From contig NC_043014.1 in NCBI RefSeq assembly GCF_006345805.1, forward strand, positions 12,834,001-12,898,000: a stretch of 64,000 bases of DNA, written 5' to 3'. Both the position numbers and the translations under genes were made by a program. The number at the start of each line of letters is the position of its first letter. The first letter of the stretch is position 1. Under the pieces are notes generated by a model. The model was not told where the DNA came from. It did no database searches and worked only from the letters and a program-made list of their open reading frames with translations. Below, piece after piece: positions 11,960 to 29,232 of this stretch. The stretch is from Octopus sinensis (Eukaryota).

Positions 11960-12960
11960 ATAAAAATTGATTTCATTATGTTAGAATTCTCATGTTACGT
12001 TTCTGTTCGAACAACATCCATCTTTATACAAGTCTCATTTGTAGCTATACTTCAAATAATTCATGAACATGTTTCCAAGTTAAGGAGTTTCATATTTTCT
12101 CCAAAGACATCAACTGAATTACACTACATTCGTCTATATCAAAGTTTCCGACCTAGACAATTCCTCCATTATTTCTTCTGCTCTATATTGAATAACCCCT
12201 GATATATTCTGCTTATTCTTCACTAAACTACAACGGAAAAAATTTTCAAGCGGACCCCTTGCCAATGGCACGTAAAAAGCACCCACTACACTCACGGAGT
12301 GGTTGGTGTTAGGAAGGGCACCCAGCCGTAGAAACATTGCCAGATCAGACTGGGCCTGGTGCAGCCTTCTGGCCTCCCAGACCCCAGTTGAACCGTCCAA
12401 CCCATGCTAGCATGGAAAGCGGATGCTAAATGATGATGATGATGATGTACAATTTCAGTTCTGTGTTCCCACATAGTTCATGTACCTGGAATCTGAGCAG
12501 GTGAAATTGCATCTATTTTCATGATCACATATAACAGTGTACAAGACCACTTTGCCGGAATTCAACATGCATATGTGCAAGAGACACACCCAAAACATGT
12601 CTTTCTGCAATGTCTATGAACTTTCTGAGCTTTTTAGATGTGTGCCACCTGGTTAGGTCTCTTGAGGAGCCAAGATTGTTGGCAATTTCAGGGCATTTTG
12701 AAGTGACAGGCATGTTAAAAACAAATCAAGTTTTCCATAATGGTTAAAACTGGTCATGGTATTTAGACAGGAATGCTGTATTCCAAGGGCTTCCTGAAAG
12801 AGATGAGAGAACAGCTGGGACACCATTATTTTCCTTTATCAAATAATCTATCAGACCTAAACTGAGATTGGTTTTAACCCATCTTATCCTAATGCCTACA
12901 ATTGCAGACCTTGCATATTAACTGCAGAACAGGTTGTCAACTGATAGGTTTAAATTGTGT
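11960..12960 (-). pseudogene. Helitron RepHel (Rep domain) fragment, interrupted by a repeat at about 12260-12450
   Basis: Minus-strand remnants HYGKLDLFLT..(frameshift)..SKCPEIANNL and KKLRKFIDIAERHVLGVSLAHMHVEFRQSGLVHCYM match the Helitron Rep motifs YGKPDLFxTFTCNPxWPEI and xEFQKRGLPHxH. Confidence 0.7.
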
Positions 12961-14190: not shown

Positions 14191-14744
14191 TACAGTCCCA
14201 AGTGTTTCAGATGAAAAACTAATAATAGCTAAGCACATTAAAAAATTAGTAGCATCTTTGTACCAATTTTTAAAATCCCATCTCTAAAATTGAGCAAATT
14301 TTTCAAATTCTACTGAAAAAAGGTTTTAAATTTAAGTACACCCTATCACTGATATCACCATAGTTGTATGTTGGAGAGGAAAGTGACATCTATTTTGAAG
14401 GAAAAAAAAAGAAAAAGAATTCATCATTTAACGTTTTCTTTGTAGGTGTGGACTAAATGGTTGGACAGGACCTGGCAAACAACAGGGCTGTATCAAGCTC
14501 TGTCAGTTTGGTTTAGTTTCTATGGCTAGGTGATTGCCTTAATACCAACCACTTTATAGAGTGTATTTGGTGGGTGGCTTAGTGCCAGGTGTTAGGAAGT
14601 ATGATCGACAGACAACAGGTGTCTTACTATAAGGACTGGAGGTGTATCTGGGAAGAGCAAACCCTCAAGGAGCTATTTGTACAAAGCATTTAAATCTAGT
14701 TTCCAAGTCAGTTGCAAAATGTACACATAAAAGTAAATTATTTG

Positions 14745-16073: not shown

Positions 16074-16237
16074 CTGAAATTAAAAAATAAGAAAAGGAAA
16101 AAAAAAGTATCATATATGGATACTCACAAATATGAATTCATACATGTTACCTGTATATTACACAAACACATACATATTGTATATATACATATATATATAT
16201 ATATATAGATACACACACACACACACATATATACATA

Positions 16238-16746
16238 CAAGGTGTCCCAGAATTAACTATTTCAGTAAAATTCAACAATTTTTTAAAGAATTTTAAGAAC
16301 TCACTTTTAATTACTTTCATCACGTTTAATATATGTTAAAAGTGTTAAAATTTATAATTTTCCTCTTTTTTCTTTTGATAATTTTATTTCCATTCTCGAT
16401 GGATCCCACTTATCTGCCCACGAGTGGTTTTTCCAATTTGGCTGCAACCATTTTCTGTAACTTCATCCCCAGGATGGAGCAATAGTTTGGCTGAACTTAA
16501 AGAATGCATTCAATTAGCAGTGCAGGAGATAACTCCTGAAATGCTTCACAATATGGTTCACAACACTAATTTGCATGGATACAAAGCATATCTTGAAAAT
16601 TTTCAATACAGTTTTCACATAAGATTTATAAATCCATTTCTTTTGGTATCACATAATGATCCATTAAACATAAAATTGTCAGTTTTTTTTTTATTTTTTA
16701 AATTGCTTATTTCATTGAAAGAGACAGTTAATTTTGATACACCCTG
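16238..16746 (+). mobile_element. Internally deleted Tc1/mariner derivative in the PABPN1 terminal intron
   Basis: Imperfect TIRs CAAGGTGTCCCAGAATTAACT / AGTTAATTTTGATACACCCTG with TA flanks; transposase C-terminal remnant LAELKECIQLAVQEITPEMLHNMV. Confidence 0.75.
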
Positions 16747-17887
16747 TACATGTATACACATTTTTCACATATATATTCACATCAGCACAATTCACAAATT
16801 CATTCACCTGGATGCTGTGGGTGCCTTGGAAACAAAATGACAGTTGCCATAAACTGTGGAGATTCACATGGTACAATCCTGCCTGAAGCTTCACTTTGAA
16901 AGATGGTGTATGTATAATCTTTATCTGAAGAAGACCCAAACAACAAAGTGTCAATAGCAATCTCAAAAATATTAAAAATTTTAATTATTGATTGAAATGT
17001 CACATCTGGTTATGATTGACTTATTTAAATGCCAAATTTAAGCACACGAAAAAATTAAGGCAATGGAACAGCAGGAAAAAAAATATATAAGTAATAATAA
17101 TTTAGGCGCGAAATGAATATTTTTGAAGAGCTTTCCTCTTGACAATGTTGTTTGGGTCTTAATTTGAACTTGAAATCATTGTTGTTCCAGTTTAAAGGAA
17201 CTAAAGATATATGCTATCAGTCTATAGAGAGCCAAGTAAAATACTCACTATTACAGTAAACTTTAGCAATCCATGTAAATAAGAGAACAAAAGATTTCAA
17301 GTCCAAATGCTGTTAACCATCTGCTAACAAATTAACTTGGCAGTTTACTTCAGAGCAACGGAGGCCCGTAATCATATTTGAGCACCAAAAGCAGTTTGGA
17401 AATATACAAATATTTTAGAAATAAATTAAGAGTATCTTTGTTACAGAGAAGAAAAAATATATATTTAAAATCTCCAAAAATTATTCAAAAATTTCCAATA
17501 GTGACTGCAGCCTTAATCATTTATTAAAATTAGGATTATACATACTATATAATCCAAAATTAAACTGTTTTTAAATACAATTATAAACTTTAATAATAAT
17601 AATAATAATAAATAGTTTCACATACAATTTTAAGATACTCTTAAGACAGGAAATGAACTGTCAACAACTGAAAATATACATATTCATATGGTTGTTTATT
17701 AGCACTGATAAACTGTATATGCATATGTATATTTTTGTGTGAATATATATATATAAAGTGTATGTAAATATGAATGTCTGTGTGTGCATACAAACAGTGA
17801 TAATGCAATGATGAAACAAAAACTAAATCATACTTGCCTTGGACAGTTGCAAAATAAACCACACATAACAAAAAATATTACACTGAC

Positions 17888-18027: not shown

Positions 18028-18409
18028 CTTTTTGACAAAGTAGATAAAAAAAAAACAAGAAAAAATATTGAAATGTTCTTGAAGTTTCTTTAAGAATAAG
18101 AATGTAAAGGAGTCCAGGACGGCTAAAATGGCCTAAACCATATTTTGCAAAATAAATAGAAAAAAAAAAAAGAAAAAAAGAGTTACTAATAACGATAAAT
18201 GACTTACTGAAGGAATTAAAAAAAAAAAAGTAAAGAAAAAATTAAAAAGTTACCAATAATGATAAATATCTTAATGAAGAAACTTAGAAAAACGAAAAAG
18301 AAAAAAAAGAAAAGAAAAAAGAAAAAGAGCAGGGATGGGTGTAAAAAGAAAAAAAAATAACTGAATCGACTTGGGTTAGTCAACATTTTTTTAGGGTCCT
18401 ACTACTCAC

Positions 18410-18416
18410 CTGTAGT
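18410..18416 (-). other. Candidate 7-nt micro-exon or recursive splice site (tttttttatttcag ACTACAG gtgagt)
   Basis: Good acceptor and good donor 7 nt apart; inclusion gives T-T-G-N-G-stop, with TAA at 18019-18017. Confidence 0.4.
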
Positions 18417-18967
18417 CTGAAATAAAAAAAATATTTATAGTACAATGAGAAAAATGCATTAAAAAAAAATTTCATCACACTTTTTTTCTTTACCTTTTTT
18501 CTTTCCTCTTGCTATTTTTTCAAGTAATATTTTCTGGAAGAATTTTTTTATGCCTTTAGTATTGAATATATATATAAATATATATACTGTTCATCCATCA
18601 GAAAAAAAAGCTGCCATTTGGAATAAATTATTATTTATCTTAACTTGCTAAGCACTGAATAATATCTAAATAAGCCTTGATTTTTTTTCTCTTTTCTTTT
18701 TACTTTTTTTTTTCTAGGTATATCGTCTTATAATGTTTTAATTAAAAGCATAGCAAAATGTGGGATAGCTTCTGCATCCTAAGTCTTCTAGTATATCTAA
18801 ACTGACTGATGGAATTTCTGGAAATGGAAGTAGCAGCCATTGATGCTCAAGACACAAAAAGTTAGTGCCAGCTGAGCTTAGATCAATATCAAACACACTG
18901 CCAGAATTACAAGAGGCCATGTCTGTAGAGTAGTTACAACTGGGGTTATGTTAAAACTAAGGCTTAC

Positions 18968-19286
18968 CTTCAACGTGTGGCACTTCTGCGGCAGACATCC
19001 AACACCAATTCCACAATTTTACACAAGTAGCTGGTATTAGAAAACGCCCCATTTTCATTTCGCCATAATAAATTTTTTTTCCAGAAATTTTTTAAGATTT
19101 TTTGCTTTTTTTCATTTTTTTCTAACTTTTTTCTAGCTTTTTTTTTGTATCTTAATTTTTTTAGCAAATTTTTTTTCCTGCTTTTTTAAATTTTTTTTTC
19201 AAGTTAATTTCTTATGTTGGAGCAATCTCATGATACCAGTATTTCTCCTCTTGAAATGCAAAGCCTCATCTGCAAGCCAACCTGTT
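18968..19286 (-). other. Candidate poison cassette exon in PABPN1 intron 5 containing an oligo(A) array
   Basis: Acceptor ccattttgtttag|AACAG; strong donor AAG|GTAAGC at 18968; in-frame TGA at 19268-19266 after exon 5; 11 sense A6-A9 tracts at 19073-19199. Confidence 0.5.
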
Positions 19287-20007
19287 CTAAACAAAATGGC
19301 CGAAAGATCAAATACTGACAGGAAAGCTTACAAAAATACAAAATGTATATATCTTTTTTTCTCTCTTGTTTCTTTTTAGGATCTGTCGGCACCTCAGTGT
19401 ATACATACTAACATGATGGGATGATCATGTATGTAAAGAGGCATACAGTGCAGAGTTAGAGATAAAATACAACACAAGATCTTGGAATGTAATAGAATTT
19501 CAAAAACAGCATATTTAAGCATTGATGTTACAATTCACTACAAAAATGACAAAAAAAAAAAGGAAAGAAAAAATAAAAAGTTCAGGTAGAACTCTGAGCA
19601 TCCAATATAAATTAGACGCCATTGCAGGTAACTCGATAGCTGACAACTTAATTATATAATCGTTCATTTTTTAAGTGCAATGTAAATCATGGTTAAATAG
19701 CCAAGCAATACTTCCAAGATCTCTGTTTTTTAATTACATACACAATGCCCAATCTAACTAGCCTTTAAGATAAGGCACCATTCTTCAATATCTTTTCTTT
19801 GGTGTGTATTTTTTTAAGTAAACTTTTTCCCCAACCTTATGGTGGGTGACTCCCGCTACATTAAAAGGAAAATTTAATATCTCAACTAGTAACAGCTATA
19901 TTAGAAACTAGAATGGAGTTATTGTTGTGTGTGAAAGGTTTTAACCCCCAACCTCCTTTTATTTCACTGGTTTTAGTGAAGTCAATGCAATGATGTAGTT
20001 TACTTAC

Positions 20008-20095: not shown

Positions 20096-21197
20096 CTAAA
20101 ATTAACAAAGACTCAAATCATGAACAACACACCAAGAAAGTATATTTAAAAACAAAAACCTACTTTGTAATAAGTGAATATCTGGTTTCAATTTCCCTTA
20201 TTTCCAATAATAAAAAGAATACCAATGGAAACAACAAAAATGGTTTCCCCCAGTCTCGTCACTTAGGGTCCACTTTTCTATGCATTCATGGGTCAGATCG
20301 ATTTTCTACAGCCACAAACCCTTCCTACTTCCCAAAAAAGGTTTCCAGATAATTGAAAACAACCTTGAATTTTTGACAATTTAGAACCATTATGCTAAGG
20401 GTACAAATACACATATATAGACAACTATGTATCATCATCATCGTTTAACGCCCGCTTTCCATGCTAGCATGGGTTGACTGAGGACTGGTGAGCCAAAGGC
20501 TGCACTAGGCTCAATCTGATCTGGCAAAGTTTCTACAGCTGGATGCCCTTTCTAATGCCAACCATTCCGAGAGTGTAGTGGGTGCTTTTTATGTGCTACC
20601 TACACGGGAGCCAGTCTGGCAGCACTGGCAACGATTACGCTCGAATGCTGTGTTCCATGTACCAGTAAGGCGATCACCCTCAAATAGTGATTTTCAGATG
20701 TCACCGGCAAGGAGCCAATCCGTGGCCCTGGCAACTATCACACTCAGATGTGTTGTTAACGTTCCACTGGCACAAGTGCCAATCAGGTGGTACTGTCATT
20801 GGTCATGTCATATATATATGACAAGTTTCTTTCAGTTTCCACCTACGAATTCCACTCACAAAGTTTGCGTTGGCCTGGAGCTGAAGTAGCAGATACTTGC
20901 CCAAAATGTCACATAATGGGACTGAACCCAAGACCACATGGTTGAGGAGCAACCACACAGCCATGTCTACTCCCTAGTGGAATATAACTGTAGAGAGTAA
21001 AGAAACTACAAACTGATTAAATAATAATAGAAAAATTTAAGGTTTCAAGAAGAGTGTAGAATTCTCCATCCAAATTAGCTTCACACAAGACATCAACCAT
21101 ATTTTAATATTGTTTATCGGCCGTTTTGCCTAATTTACTAATGAAATATATATTGACTGGACATCACAATTCCATAAAAATAAAAACTGATACTTAC

Positions 21198-23228: not shown

Positions 23229-24570
23229 CTGTTGAAGAAATTCCAAGAACAATACAAATATGAAAATTTCATGTTTTAACAAAGACAGCGAGGAAGCAAA
23301 GAACAAAATATTGTTATATACGAAAAAAGTACGTTTGATTCAGACCGTTTTCTCCGGGATACACAGTATAAAAGCGAAAATGATGCTCTAAACTCGAAAT
23401 TCCTAATCAAGACTTCTTGACTGTAATTTAGGGATTTGGAAAAGTTTAATTATAAATTGAATGCAAATTGTCTGCTCGATCAGAAACGGTAAAAATTTAC
23501 CCAACAAAATAAAATATAACGAAATTGTTTGTAGTAACGTTTAATCACAGAAGGTATAATATAATCATTCCTATGTCGAGTTGGGCTAAAACACTATTTA
23601 AAGCAACGAGTTCTCACGACACGTAAATATATAAAACCACGTGTGCCACAACATATAAGTAAAACGACTGCAATTTCTTTTATCTCTGTTGAAGTTTAAT
23701 TCTTGGTATCTTTAAATGTTTGCAATTACTCCTTTCCACACGGAAGGAAGATGCTGATTAAACTATCCAGAAGGGGAAATGTGAAAATTCCCGAAACATA
23801 GGGGAAATCCAATTACATTAAAATAACCGCTGTCTATTGATTGACTGCAGAGGTGGATGCGTTAAAATGCTTGATGAAATGTAGCAACGTACACATTTTA
23901 AATGAACAACTTCAGCTATATATATATATATATATTTATTATATACATACATACATATTGCATGTTGTCTCAAAATATTCGACATTTTGTAGCGATTATC
24001 ATTTATGTCATAAAGACTTTTGTGAACACGAGAATTTATGATGCTAAAAAAAATTTCTTAACACCTTCGCATTATTCAAACACCGAATCGTTTGCATGAA
24101 TAACAAAAAAATTTTTTTTTTAAAGAATGGATATTGAAATGACAAGTCTTTGAAATCGATCGGTCGTACACGTGTGTATGAGGGAGGGAGAGGAGAGAAG
24201 AACGGTTCAAAATCGATATTCAATTATGTAACAATCTCTGGTTATAATTATTTACTAGCAACCCAAATTTTTTCCCCAAAAAAATATACACGAAACGTTA
24301 AGATACGGTCAATTCCCAAAAATAGCTTTTCTTTTTATTATATTACACGATCGGCAAATTAGCAGCAGCAATAGAAAATAAATAGGGCTGTGAACACGAA
24401 GTGACCTTTTTTTTCTTTTATCATTTTAAATAGGTAAGAGACAGCGCAGATGGAATTCAATCAAGATTCTCCAAAAGCCGGGAAGCGTTCTCCATTCGCC
24501 AGTTTCCTTTGGAATCAAGCGCCAGCTTCTTCAGTAAAAGATGTCACATTTTCTTCCTTGCACTGGATTG

Positions 24571-25025
24571 ATATACCAATATATATATATACATACATAT
24601 ATATATACATATACATACATATATATATACTTATATATACATACATATTGCCATACATACATACATATATATATACATATACATACATATATATATACTT
24701 ATATATACATACATATTGCCATACATACATACATATATATATATATATACATACATATTGCCATACATACATACATATATATATATATATACATACATAC
24801 ATATATACATATACATCCATATATATACATACATCCATATATACATATACATCCATATATATACATCCATATATATATATCCATATATATATATACATAT
24901 ATATATATACATATATATATACATCCATATATATGCATACATATATATATATATGCATACATATATACATATATATATATGCATACATATATACATACAT
25001 ATACATATATATACATATACATATT
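24571..25025. repeat. Compound (TA)/(TACA)/(TACATC) microsatellite in PABPN1 intron 1
   Basis: Directly visible; source of six spurious Y/I/H/T-rich ORFs. Confidence 0.95.
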
Positions 25026-25942
25026 ACATCATGACAAAGGAATAAAATAAAGAACTATTTTCTAAAATTTTATTATCTACTTAAAGAGGGTCGAAAGAAT
25101 TTCATCTCTTATTTAATTTTCGTTCGTTTTGTTATCCCCCAAAAATAGGAAAAAATGCATAGAGTTTTGAAGGATAAAATAGAAGCGGGAGTGTAGAAAA
25201 GAAACAAATTAAAAGAAAGACATTCTTGAAATGGTATTTAAAGAAATGTGGGCGAATTTCTTTCTCAAGCTACGACGGGTAGGTAGGTGAGGTGGAAAAA
25301 ACCTTTTCCACCGTAAAAGATTGTGAAAACCTTCATTTAATAAACAGCATGACGAACAACCTGCTACCTGAAATTTATAGGTTCTTCATTATCATCATCA
25401 TCACAGGTATCGCTTTTATTTCTTGTCTACATGGCAAATCAGATATATATATATATATTTTTTTTTTTTTTGATTTTTGAGGAGGAAGACGAAGAAATAT
25501 CTATCTAACAGTAGGTGATGTCATAATAAAGAAAAACCAAACTCCTGAGAAAGGAAAAAACCTAATCAAGCTCTTCTCTTCTCATCATTGCTCCGCCATT
25601 TTCAGTGTCCATGCGTTAAGATTAAAAACGTTTATATGTATATATAAATGCATATACACACATATGTATACATACATGTACATATATGAGAGCTAGAAAA
25701 GTGTAATTTGTAAAATAGACAATACTTCTGCATGGAAATAAATCGCAAAATGTTGCAAATATCAAAAGCAACATTCAAATTCCTTAGTCTTCTCCTAGAA
25801 ATATTAACAAAACAATGGCAAAGGAATCATTCCACCGCAAATCAAGAAATGGGAGCTAACAAAAAATTCTATAACTATCTATCTAAAGATATATATATAT
25901 ATATATTATAGCACTTCATGTGTGAGAGAATTAGTCACTTAC

Positions 25943-26712: not shown

Positions 26713-29232
26713 TATATATACATACATATGGCTGACAAAGTAGGTTCGTTCGACTAAACTTTAATTTGCATGGAGCTAAGTGAAAGTGGTACCAAATTAG
26801 AATTCAACACACGTTTTTTTTGTGTATTATATAATGGTAATAATAATAATAATAATGACGATGATGATGGAACATGGCCAGTAATTTCAGGAGAGGGGAT
26901 AAGTCAATTACATCGACCCTAGTACTCAACCGGCACTTATTTTATCGGCCCCGAAAAGATGAAAGACAAAGTCGACCTGAGGGGCCTTTTGAGCTCAACA
27001 TGGCAGACATAGGAGGCCTGAAAACGATTCTACCCTATAATAATAATCAAAAGCGAAAAGAACATATTCCTTTATTTCAAATGTTTAACGAAATTGACAT
27101 AGCAGTCGAAACCCGAATAGCTTAATATGTTGTGTAAACCGACTCCACGTCGATTTTTGTTTCCTCGTAACTTTCAGAAAAATGGATATTTAAAAACAAA
27201 TTTTACTACAGATACTTTTCAGGTGATGTAGATAACGATTATATCGGGATTTAATAAAAAATCAAAATGTAGGGTGCGCACGGCGACCAATTTTATTTTA
27301 TTTTACTTTCTTTTTATTCATTAAATTTCGATATTATTGTCATCTGTATCATCTGAATGCTAACTGTAGAAATTTTCATTCAAAAATAACCATTTTCTTG
27401 GGAGTTATGAGATAATAAATGTTGGAGCACATATGTGTAGATATACCACACACACACACACACACATTTTTATGTTCATTCATAATAAAAAAAACTTTAT
27501 CTTCTCTTCTAAGCAAACACACATACACAAAGGCATATGGCTAATTCTCGGGCAGACCTTGAAGAAAGGACAAGTCATTGAAGAGGTCACGAATAGCAAC
27601 AATAGGACTTTAGCAAACAAACAACCAATTGATCGCTAAACCGGCACATTAAACAAAGGATCGATTAATTAGCTGGTTCGTTATTTAACCCAATAACTAA
27701 CAATAAAGGAGTGATATTGAACCAGTGTTTGTATTGTTATTGGGATAATGACCCTCCCCGAGACACGACATAATAAAAAATCATTTCATCTTGTAGTTGC
27801 TAGGCATGCTACTTAACCACACAGCCAGGCTTCAGAATTAAGGGTTACTCTATACTTTCTGTACAGGACAAATTTATTCTTAAACAAAAATTTTATTGAC
27901 AGTGACATCGAAGTTTAAGCCAGCTAAGCAATCATTGGACTGTAGTCCAATGATGGCTTAGCTAGTCAAAACTTCAAAGTCACTGTTAAAGAATAATATA
28001 TATCATAAACATCATTTAACGCCCATTTCCCATGCTGGCATGGGTTGGACGTTTTGACCAGGTCTGCTAAGCTGAAGGCTCCACCAAACCCCAGACTGAT
28101 CTGGCATGGTTTCTACAGCTGGATGCCCTTCTTAATGCCAACCACTCTGAGAGTGTAATGGGTGTTTTTATCTGCCAAAACTACAATTTCACTTGGCTTG
28201 ACGTGTCTTCTACAAGCACAGCATATTGCCAAGGTCTCAGTTGTTTGTCATTGCCTCCATGAAGCCCAATGCTCAAAAAGTGCTTTATACATGACACCAG
28301 CACTGGCCACATTGCCTCCATCAAGCTTGTTTCAGCTTCAAAGCCAGTCACGGGACACACCGATGCCACATAAAAAGCACCATCTGATCGTGGCTGTTTG
28401 CAAGCCTCGTCTGGTACCTGTGCAGGTAGCACATAAATAGCACCCACTACACTCTCGGAGTGGTTGGCGTTAGGAAGGGCATCCAACTGTAGAAACACTG
28501 CCAGATCAGACTGGGCCTGGCGCAGCCTTCTGGCTTCCCAGACCCCAGTTGAACCGTCCAACCCATGCTAGCATGGAAAACGGACGTTAAACGATGATGA
28601 TGATGATGATACACACACACGTGTGTATAAAACCCAGAGCTGATTTTCCGAAATCTTATTAGTATGGATACCAATTAGTTCTAAGAGGTTCCACGCAAAG
28701 GAATCAAGCCCAACTCCTAAGCTATAAGATTCACTAAGTAAAGCTTTCTTACTTTGTGATGATTATCACCCAATGCTTTAAAAAAAGAAATTTGTTTATC
28801 TTATTGCAAAAATGTAAGACAGATGTAGTTGGACTTAACTCACGCTCAGCACAACATATCCTATTTTATCAGAACAGCAGACTGAAGTGCAAAAGCAGTT
28901 GAATGTAGCAATAATGTCAACAAGGCTAAATACTGCCTCCTGCCAAGTCAGTTAAAATTAGCATTTTACTGAATCTGATATCCTTTCTAAAAAATAAAGC
29001 ATCGTCAAAAGAATGTGTACACATTTTAGGAAAGGAAAAATCCGTACAGCAATAGTAAATGAGATTTCTAAATGACATTATGGTATTTCTGAAGCCTGGC
29101 TGTGTGGTTAAGAAGCATGCTTAACAACCACATGGTTTTGGGTTCAGTTCCACTGTACAGCACTTTGGGCAAGTATCTTTTATGGCCCTGCCTTGTGAGA
29201 AAATTTGGTAGATGAAACTGAGTGGAGCCTCA

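Follow-up and report, generated by a model that had tools for sequence, protein, structure and literature searches.

PABPN1 sets the length of poly(A) tails, the choice of poly(A) sites, and nuclear RNA decay, and its dose therefore matters. The autoregulation of this protein has been worked out so far in human cells only, through an element in the 3' UTR of its transcript that an earlier note on the DNA analyzed here describes as A-rich. Genome-encoded A-tracts are also found in the transcripts of other poly(A)-binding proteins. For instance, PABPC1 mRNA contains an oligo(A) autoregulatory sequence in its 5' UTR, which acts on cytoplasmic translation, and the yeast NAB2 transcript has an A26 tract in its 3' UTR, through which negative feedback is exerted via nuclear exosome decay. 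In the account of the human gene that PMC5602073 provides, PABPN1 binds to its own 3' UTR, leading to retention of the terminal intron, nuclear retention of the transcript, and decay by the exosome (Bergeron et al., 2015, per PMC5602073). A further set of RNA-binding protein genes, including SRSF3/5/7 and TRA2B, is known for ultraconserved poison exons, and that of ARGLU1 lies inside a retained intron (PMC5602073; PMC11791180). In ARGLU1 and the SRSF genes, the ultraconserved poison exon is accompanied by retention of the flanking introns (PMC5602073).

Intron 5 of cephalopod PABPN1 contains a real, ancient, and deeply conserved module of unproductive splicing and retention, through which PABPN1 probably regulates its own synthesis. 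The DNA analyzed here, referred to as the window, is a stretch of 64,000 nucleotides from Octopus sinensis (contig NC_043014.1), and coordinates are counted from its first letter. Over 14.5 kb, it matches chromosome CM016876.1 of O. sinensis assembly GCA_006345805.1 with 100% identity. PABPN1 is encoded on the minus strand of the window, as are all features described below, and the translation of its exons is 100% identical to Octopus PABP2. Coding exons E1 to E4 lie at 26044-25943, 23228-23123, 21886-21822, and 21304-21198. Exon E5 (20095-20008), which encodes the end of the RRM (...FRARQIK) and terminates in phase 0, is the upstream partner of the alternative exon considered here; its downstream partner is E6 (18027-17888), which has an A-run directly before the AG of its 3' splice site (caaaaag|G). 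The last coding exon, E7, lies at 16073-16037. Intron 5 extends from 20007 to 18028, is approximately 2 kb in length, and is AT-rich.

The alternative exon in intron 5 is a stop-bearing (poison) exon of 319 nt (18968..19286). Its first acceptor, ggccattttgtttag|AACAG, places the start at 19286, both by direct reading and by script, and a second acceptor 5 nt inside the exon places it at 19281. The donor, GTTGAAG|GTAAGC after 18968, is, in the interval from +20 to +700 relative to the exon start, the sole site that fits the donor consensus at 8 or more of its 9 positions. With E5 ending in phase 0, translation from acceptor 1 continues as NRLACR and stops at a TGA (19266..19268) that is the same in 7/7 sequences compared, and translation from acceptor 2 in Octopus continues as VGLQMRLCISRGEILVS and stops at a second TGA (19228..19230). 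If the donor is used, the acceptor-1 stop is 298 nt and the acceptor-2 stop 260 nt ahead of the junction of the exon with E6, and the E6/E7 junction is further on. Four blocks surround and make up the exon apart from its central array: (i) an upstream intronic flank (19287..19341; TTTTTGTAAGCTTTCCTGTCAGTATTTGATCTTTCGGCCATTTTGTTTAG) with a polypyrimidine tract, a probable branch point, and a conserved GTAAGC; (ii) a 5' conserved block of the exon (19190..19286) with the purine-rich motifs GAGGAGAAA and AAGAAATTAAC; (iii) a 3' conserved block (18968..19062) that terminates in the donor AAG|GTAAGC; and (iv) a downstream intronic flank (18878..18967; GTAAGCCTTAGTTTTAACATAACCC...TCTTGTAATTCTGGCAGTGTG), which was aligned with Argonauta and species D.

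An earlier note on this DNA had taken the same limits for intron 5, had read two acceptors 5 nt apart and a strong AAG|GTAAGC donor at 18968, had placed an early stop from either acceptor far upstream of two later junctions, and had assigned about 40% of the exon to an oligo(A) array; the exact mapping of the coding exons, the direct and scripted readings, and the measured array (127 of 319 nt) all bear these points out. A 2-kb AT-rich intron can readily contain a pair of splice sites with a stop, and this part by itself does not exceed chance. The density of the array, in contrast, exceeds chance. This putative poly(A)-like sensor occupies 127 nt (19063..19189; 40% of the exon), is 68% A, and consists of 11 runs of A6-A9 separated by spacers of 2-9 nt (GCTAG, GTTAG, TG, GC, and others). 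It has 11 runs of at least six A per 150 nt, against a mean of 0.21-0.24 for the window and a maximum of 5 elsewhere on either strand of the 64 kb. Tandem Repeats Finder (TRF) detected only weak periodicities of 8-14 nt in the array, and a repeat search returned short A/T-run families and no transposon-like copy, so that a clean tandem repeat or a recognizable mobile element was rejected as its origin. An array of comparable kind was not found in the 3' UTR of octopus PABPN1.

The locus was compared with those of O. bimaculoides (L002), Argonauta hians (L003, L004), and another Octopus species (Logan contigs L013-L015, which are colinear and unspliced), as well as with four more divergent cephalopods, species A-D, which are known from RNA-seq or metatranscriptome contigs alone. 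The coding exons of species A-D are 77-87% identical to octopus, which is lower than the 83-94% of Argonauta, and these species are therefore probably decapodiforms; "squid-like" is used below in this sense, as judged from divergence. Every species has 8-11 runs of at least six A in the array (10 in Argonauta, 8-10 in species A and D), whereas the letter identity of the array between Octopus and species A and D is only 52-61%. Arrays of 127-159 nt are found in Octopus and in species A and D. The array is longer in Argonauta, where a (GA)n insertion lies at its start; the 216-218 nt that the script returned for Argonauta are too long, as they run into the 3' conserved block. In the alignment, the array is kept in kind and not in letters, as expected of a binding platform defined by composition. 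Some non-A spacers are nonetheless conserved in the alignment, namely ATTAAGATA, CTAGAAAAAA, TCTGRAAAA, and TATGGCGA. Single A-runs are 6-9 nt long in Octopus and at most 12 nt in the other species. Tight binding of PABPN1 needs roughly 10-12 A, and binding to these runs, which are at or below this length, would have to be cooperative or weak. Short interrupted tracts would suit a cooperative sensor of low affinity, which fills only when free PABPN1 is high, and are equally a caveat to PABPN1 as the binder.

Whichever factor reads it, intron 5 very likely contains a functional, selected element of unproductive splicing. The more specific reading, to which a probability of about 0.6 is assigned, is that surplus PABPN1 occupies the array and, through inclusion of the exon or stalled splicing, would lower the synthesis of PABPN1. 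Free nuclear PABPN1 in excess of what poly(A) tails can take up would load onto the array in its own pre-mRNA, and occupancy of the array would divert processing away from the productive E5-E6 splice. Two outcomes could follow. In the first, the exon would be included, and the stop, 260-300 nt before the next junction, would expose the transcript to NMD. In the second, splicing of the two half-introns would stall, and the transcript, with its intron detained, would be held in the nucleus and degraded by the exosome, as happens with human PABPN1. Less PABPN1 would be made in either case. We infer the binder of the array, the direction of its effect, and the route of decay, with PABPN1 binding and decay both modeled on human PABPN1.

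The features of the exon could also be read by a different protein. The module would then be the same, and the array and its purine-rich surroundings would be recognized by a Tra2- or SR-type factor, by ZC3H14 (a zinc-finger protein that binds poly(A)), by a cytoplasmic-type PABP, or by an hnRNP, giving cross-regulation in place of self-regulation. The exon contains the motifs GAGGAGAAA, AAGAAATT, CTAGAAAAAAG, and TTAGAAAAAAA, and its purine-rich AGAA and GAGGAG could equally recruit Tra2- or SR-type factors; in addition, the individual A-runs are short for PABPN1, and the conserved non-A spacers suggest that more than plain A content is read. On the other hand, it is the number and density of A-runs that are conserved across lineages and not the letters of the spacers overall (52-61%), and the host gene itself encodes a nuclear poly(A) binder whose human orthologue regulates itself through an A-rich element. 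Self-regulation by PABPN1 is the more economical reading in view of the conserved A-runs, the identity of the host gene, and the human precedent, and control by another factor is accordingly considered possible and rather unlikely.

Splicing to the exon is represented in existing protein annotations. A 162-aa isoform that ends in RQIK-NRLACR corresponds to acceptor 1 and is present in O. sinensis (XP_029647329.1, isoform X3) and O. vulgaris (CAI9737417.1), and a 173-aa isoform that ends in RQIK-VGLQMRLCISRGEILVS corresponds to acceptor 2 and is present in the same two species (XP_029647328.1, isoform X2; CAI9737416.1). These truncated forms are members of the 90%-identity cluster of the octopus protein, and use of both acceptors is known in this sense at the level of annotation. 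The alternative forms of the O. vulgaris annotation come from a PASA step that drew on assembled Iso-Seq and RNA-seq data (PMC10700109). Because the O. vulgaris forms derive from PASA assemblies, the splicing of E5 to both acceptors is transcript-based in that species, and this support is probably independent of the NCBI models. The event in intron 5 is thus known to annotation pipelines, where it is filed under protein isoforms. What RefSeq lists as isoforms X2 and X3 probably represents non-productive transcripts and not proteins.

RNAs that retain intron 5 were found as contigs in three species. Species A (4 runs) and species C (2 samples) yielded contigs in which E1-E5 are spliced and are followed by intron 5a and the exon; contigs L005-L008, L010, and L011 show this arrangement, with spliced E1-E5 running on through intron 5a into the exon. 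In species D (3 runs), contigs span intron 5a, the exon, and intron 5b, and end 27 nt inside E6 (30 nt if the AAG shared by the end of intron 5b and the end of E5 is counted). This end point is precisely the one at which a k=31 graph would be expected to merge with reads from the spliced E5-E6 form, which argues that the contigs are of RNA origin and that both forms were present in the samples. Contigs L016-L018 carry intron 5 unspliced up to E6, and the unspliced set as a whole comprises L013-L018. The ready recovery of retained intron 5 fits the pattern of a poison exon inside detained introns that is seen in ARGLU1 and SRSF genes. As the contigs show retention and not clean inclusion of a cassette, the event may amount to a detained intron with nuclear decay as much as to NMD.

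The earlier note had proposed that junctions 20008>19286 and 18968>18027 be sought. The acceptor side stands, in that both predicted acceptors are those of the annotated truncated isoforms of O. sinensis RefSeq and the O. vulgaris models; the donor side was not recovered. In baited homology searches, exact look-ups, and scans of sequence collections, a spliced E5-to-exon junction was found in no contig or protein of species A-D, and a spliced exon-to-E6 junction in no contig or protein of any species. The exact look-ups covered the ORFs of the window and 20 hypothetical proteins that span or depend on the junctions, and they are weak negatives, since the canonical 213-aa protein of species A and B is absent from the same collection. 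Only the product of an unspliced donor (MKMGRF...EGKP) was present among them, and it led to contigs L013-L018. Homology baits made of the 3' end of the exon with E6, and of E5 with the exon peptides, returned only unrelated short fragments, and pattern scans of the metagenome collection for invariant 20-21-mers produced no more than a single chance match, in a GC-rich bacterial contig. Contig L006 terminates precisely at ...GTTGAAG-GT. A branch after GT is expected from a mixture of spliced and unspliced reads, as the intron continues with GTAAGC and E6 starts with GTCATG (species B and D); L006 nevertheless continues across the corresponding branch where E5 ends, and its own end thus has little weight for use of the donor. 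The donor at 18968 is strong, has no rival nearby, and is conserved along with approximately 90 nt of downstream intron; with no spliced exon-to-E6 junction among the sequences searched, we infer from these properties that it is used.

These transcripts also bear on whether the exon might be an alternative last exon formed by intronic polyadenylation, or might encode a truncated protein of 162 or 173 aa with a function of its own. Several RNA contigs end within the A-array, which could reflect 3' ends or internal priming by oligo(dT), although breaks at A-runs are expected from k-mer assembly, and contigs L006 and L016 traverse the array in full. Neither AATAAA nor ATTAAA occurs in the Octopus exon, and when lineages are compared, no poly(A) signal recurs at the same position; intronic polyadenylation was rejected on the lack of a conserved signal inside the exon and on the two contigs that cross the array. 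The 3' block, the donor, and 90 nt past the donor are conserved as well, and an exon that ends at the array would have no need of them. As to a truncated protein, RefSeq and ENA list the products as protein isoforms, and such a form would comprise the coiled coil and the RRM without the RG-rich and PY-containing C-terminus. The peptide from acceptor 2 is not conserved, however, and the exon is not kept in frame. Its lengths of 317, 318, 319, 343, 350, 410, and 414 nt fall into all three residue classes modulo 3, and a 1-nt indel between the octopods and species A and D alters both the acceptor-2 peptide and the position of its stop; the only invariant reading is the six-codon read-through from acceptor 1 with its TGA. 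The variable length and the acceptor-2 indel indicate that selection acts on the RNA and not on a protein. Taken as a whole, a last exon or a functional truncated protein is improbable.

It is at the level of nucleotides, and not of the protein, that the segment is deeply conserved. The other Octopus species differs from O. sinensis by 0.11 differences per nt over 3.5 kb (20139-16594). At this surrounding rate, about 50 differences are expected in the 464 nt of the exon and its flanks (19341-18878), and 3 are found. The 319 nt of the exon contain 2 of these, both in the length of A-runs, and the downstream flank (18878..18967) contains 1; E5 has 4 in 88 nt. The upstream flank (19287..19341) is identical in 55/55 positions in two other Octopus species and in 52/55 (95%) in species A and D. 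The first 97 nt of the exon are 86-95% identical between species A and D and octopus, compared with 77-87% for coding exons E1-E5. The last 95 nt up to the donor are 89-92% identical in species A and D and 95/95 in two other Octopus species, and approximately 90 nt more of recognizable sequence follow the donor when species A-D are compared with octopus. In Argonauta, neither AG has been lost, and the stop, the donor, and the sequence just past the donor are likewise preserved, although there is a 16-nt deletion in the polypyrimidine region. The donor AAG|GTAAGC is invariant across lineages. As a control, intron 5a of the retained contigs is barely alignable to octopus, and between species A and C the start of the exon is 100% identical, against 52-90% for intron 5a. 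In these alignments, the exon and the adjacent intron are conserved as much as or more than the coding exons, and far beyond chance. The splice sites, the stop, and the A-array are thus shared by the orthologous introns of octopods and of more distant cephalopods. The suggestion of the earlier note that intron 5 be aligned across molluscs had a divided outcome: the element is present in octopods and squid-like cephalopods, and no homologue of the cephalopod blocks was found in intron 5 of PABPN1 from oyster and Aplysia, which makes the module lineage-specific.

A conserved span of approximately 460 nt that extends beyond both ends of the exon might instead be a DNA-level element, such as an intronic enhancer or another conserved non-coding element, or might host a structured or non-coding RNA, with the splice-like ends being secondary. 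An RNAalifold model does predict pairing of the donor region with the 5' part of the exon, and of the acceptor with the upstream flank. The stability of the predicted fold, however, does not exceed that of shuffled sequence (z = +0.63), compensatory change is seen in only 2/91 predicted pairs, and substitutions in Argonauta break pairs of the acceptor hairpin. With this z value and almost no covariation, an RNA structure that sequesters both splice sites was not counted as evidence. A scan against Rfam gave no match in the segment itself, and the sub-threshold mir-297-like matches nearby are TA/CA repeats. Moreover, conservation extends to the AG and GT dinucleotides themselves, to the stop, and to A-runs that are specific to one strand, and annotated transcripts make use of the acceptors, all of which makes a purely DNA-level or structural element very improbable. 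Finally, acceptor/donor pairs and stops are common in 2-kb AT-rich introns and pipelines do record noise isoforms, yet a cryptic neutral pseudo-exon assembled from chance motifs, with isoforms that are splicing noise, is effectively refuted by the conservation data (3 differences against ~50 expected among Octopus species, a similarity to distant cephalopods that exceeds that of the coding exons, and an array unique in the window).

A second stop-bearing cassette exon is located in intron 6 of the same minus-strand gene (16924-16808; 117 nt). It starts with A|TAA, so that the protein ends in ...PRYR and is without the C-terminal SRFRRSLWYQPY. A species B transcript contains this exon (91% identical to octopus) in the spliced order E6-exon-E7. 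Three Octopus species show 0 differences in it, and the O. vulgaris annotation includes it as a 203-aa form. By sequence comparison, it is as conserved as the exon of intron 5. Cephalopod PABPN1 appears to have two unproductive or alternative switches. Intron 6 is what we take to be the positional counterpart of the autoregulated terminal intron of human PABPN1, given the shared ...PY C-terminus.

A-rich stretches were also observed 3' of the stop codon of PABPN1 in oyster and Aplysia. In Aplysia, there are 8 runs of at least six A per 150 nt, with CTAG/GTTAG/GATAG spacers, about 680-900 nt past the stop; this array was seen in DNA, and the one transcript contig stops short of it. These A-arrays hint that the sensor may be ancestral and mobile. 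It can be suggested, tentatively and at somewhat less than even odds, that a genome-encoded mimic of the poly(A) tail that senses free nuclear PABPN1 is an old and recurrent design with a mobile sensor, placed in the 3' UTR in human and possibly in Aplysia and oyster, and, in the octopods and squid-like cephalopods compared here, in a poison exon that lies between detained half-introns and acts together with an intron-6 exon that removes the PY motif. If this were true, cephalopod PABPN1 would be a two-switch homeostat, with a sensor frozen since the divergence of octopods and squid-like cephalopods.

No paper that discusses the intron-5 exon of cephalopod or mollusc PABPN1 was found in the literature searches, which agrees with the view of the earlier note that this architecture was undescribed in molluscs, the isoforms themselves being already in RefSeq. 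The locus is of interest to specialists in RNA processing and cephalopod genomics, and it is no conceptual surprise. Its cis logic is easy to read, since the exon proposed to destroy the message bears the ligand of the encoded protein. The near-identity between octopods and squid-like cephalopods places it among the clearer invertebrate counterparts of the ultraconserved poison exons of vertebrates. At approximately 460 nt, it also offers a compact and testable system in which to ask how the nucleus reads short A-tracts with interruptions, whether a single element can yield both inclusion of a poison exon and detention of introns, and in what way sensors shift between UTR and intron during evolution.

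Octopus PABPN1 has in common with yeast NAB2 that its transcript encodes a nuclear poly(A) binder and contains genome-encoded A-tracts; NAB2, in contrast, is a zinc-finger protein, and its single long 3'-UTR tract acts on 3'-end formation, with no alternative exon. Like PABPC1, octopus PABPN1 has short interrupted oligo(A) tracts in the mRNA of a poly(A)-binding protein, which are a self-sensor in PABPC1 and, by analogy, a putative one in octopus. PABPC1 differs in being a distantly related poly(A) binder of the RRM type, in which neither splicing nor a premature stop is involved.

The likeness to SRSF3/5/7, TRA2B, and ARGLU1 lies in a cassette exon with a premature stop in the gene of an RNA-binding protein, where the exon and its flanks are conserved beyond the coding exons. 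In genes of the ARGLU1/SRSF type, inclusion of the exon coexists with retention of the flanking introns; in octopus PABPN1, inclusion is represented by the annotated acceptors together with a donor whose use is predicted. The exons of SRSF, TRA2B, and ARGLU1 carry SR, Tra2, or ARGLU1 motifs, whereas the array in the octopus exon resembles poly(A), the ligand for which the host protein is specific. Unlike the vertebrate ultraconserved exons with which it is compared, the octopus-type exon is conserved, as far as is seen, within cephalopods only.

The closest counterpart is human PABPN1. The gene family is the same, transcripts with a retained intron occur in both, and both have an element in their own pre-mRNA, which is A-rich in octopus and is described as A-rich in human by the earlier note. 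The poly(A)-like character of the platform is far more explicit in octopus. The logic would also be the same, namely negative feedback through a failure of productive splicing. The position is different. In the human gene, as far as the account in PMC5602073 describes it, the element lies in the 3' UTR, the intron concerned is the terminal one (intron 6), and decay is by the nuclear exosome. In octopus, the A-tracts lie in intron 5, inside a stop-bearing cassette exon with conserved splice sites at both ends; this exon follows the RRM exon and precedes the C-terminal exons, and the element is located two junctions before the last exon rather than in the 3' UTR or terminal intron. By its position, the octopus element has a different architecture, which would serve the same logic.

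In the RNA contigs of the divergent, squid-like species A and C, spliced exons E1-E5 are followed by intron 5a, the part of intron 5 upstream of the stop-bearing oligo(A) exon, instead of E6 (contigs L005-L008, L010, and L011; six samples). That the assembled contigs continue from E5 into intron 5a and not into E6 implies that the retained form was not minor relative to the E5-E6 junction in these runs.

Downstream of the oligo(A) exon, intron 5b contains the motif tttcag|ACTACAG|GTGAGTAG (18410-18416, minus strand), which looks like either a micro-exon of 7 nt or a recursive splice site. Position 18416 is the alternative junction target that was named in the earlier note. The AG...CAG|GTGAGTA frame is retained in three Octopus species, while the 7 nt between are variable, and the motif is also present in species D as TTTCAG|TTGTCAG|GTGAGTAAC (contig L016, about 1473-1479); no counterpart was found in Argonauta. 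At the E6 acceptor of cephalopods (18028-18040, minus strand), an A-run lies immediately 5' of the AG: Octopus reads caaaaag|G, Argonauta gcaaaag|G, and species D taaaaaaag|G. The E6 acceptor is ordinary in oyster (ttacag|G) and Aplysia (gtccag|G). The A-flanked E6 acceptor of cephalopods may be deliberately weak, as a component of the same regulatory design as the intron-5 module.

Intron 6 of PABPN1 contains a second stop-bearing cassette exon of 117 nt (16808-16924, minus strand), bordered by cttcttcag|ATAAAG and CATCCAG|gtgaat. Its inclusion yields a 203-aa PABPN1 (O. vulgaris CAI9737415.1) that terminates in ...PRYR* and does not have the C-terminal SRFRRSLWYQPY, a PY-type motif. Splicing of E6 to this exon to E7 is present in the species B transcript (L009, 91% identical), and PRYR* is the C-terminus of every "full-length" member of the squid-like protein cluster. 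The exon shows 0 differences among the three Octopus species compared, and it ends a conserved intronic block of ~660 nt (16780-17440, minus strand) that is alignable in Argonauta at 75%.

A dispersed repeat, which is probably an interspersed element of cephalopods, has copies at ~12130-12480, 20420-20900 (intron 4), and 28010-28680; the copies contain similar spurious ORFs (MDGSTGVWEARRL...) and show 77-84% identity among themselves and with sequence upstream of PABPN1. Long TA/CA-type microsatellites at 24500-25050 (intron 1) and 16130-16250 give rise to spurious ORFs of 100-190 aa whose residues are Y, I, H, M, and C. The sub-threshold Rfam matches to mir-297 and mir-1277 also stem from these microsatellites.

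Oligo(A) arrays in the style of the octopus intron-5 array are also found 3' of the PABPN1 stop codon in Ostrea edulis (locus L019, 12760-12870 and 13320-13400) and Aplysia californica (locus L020, 14880-15100). The array of Aplysia may belong to the 3' UTR; the Aplysia transcript contig L021 stops at 14713, short of the array. The Aplysia array, which has 8 runs of at least six A per 150 nt with the spacers CTAG, GTTAG, and GATAG, is the densest A-run cluster in the 15-kb PABPN1 locus.
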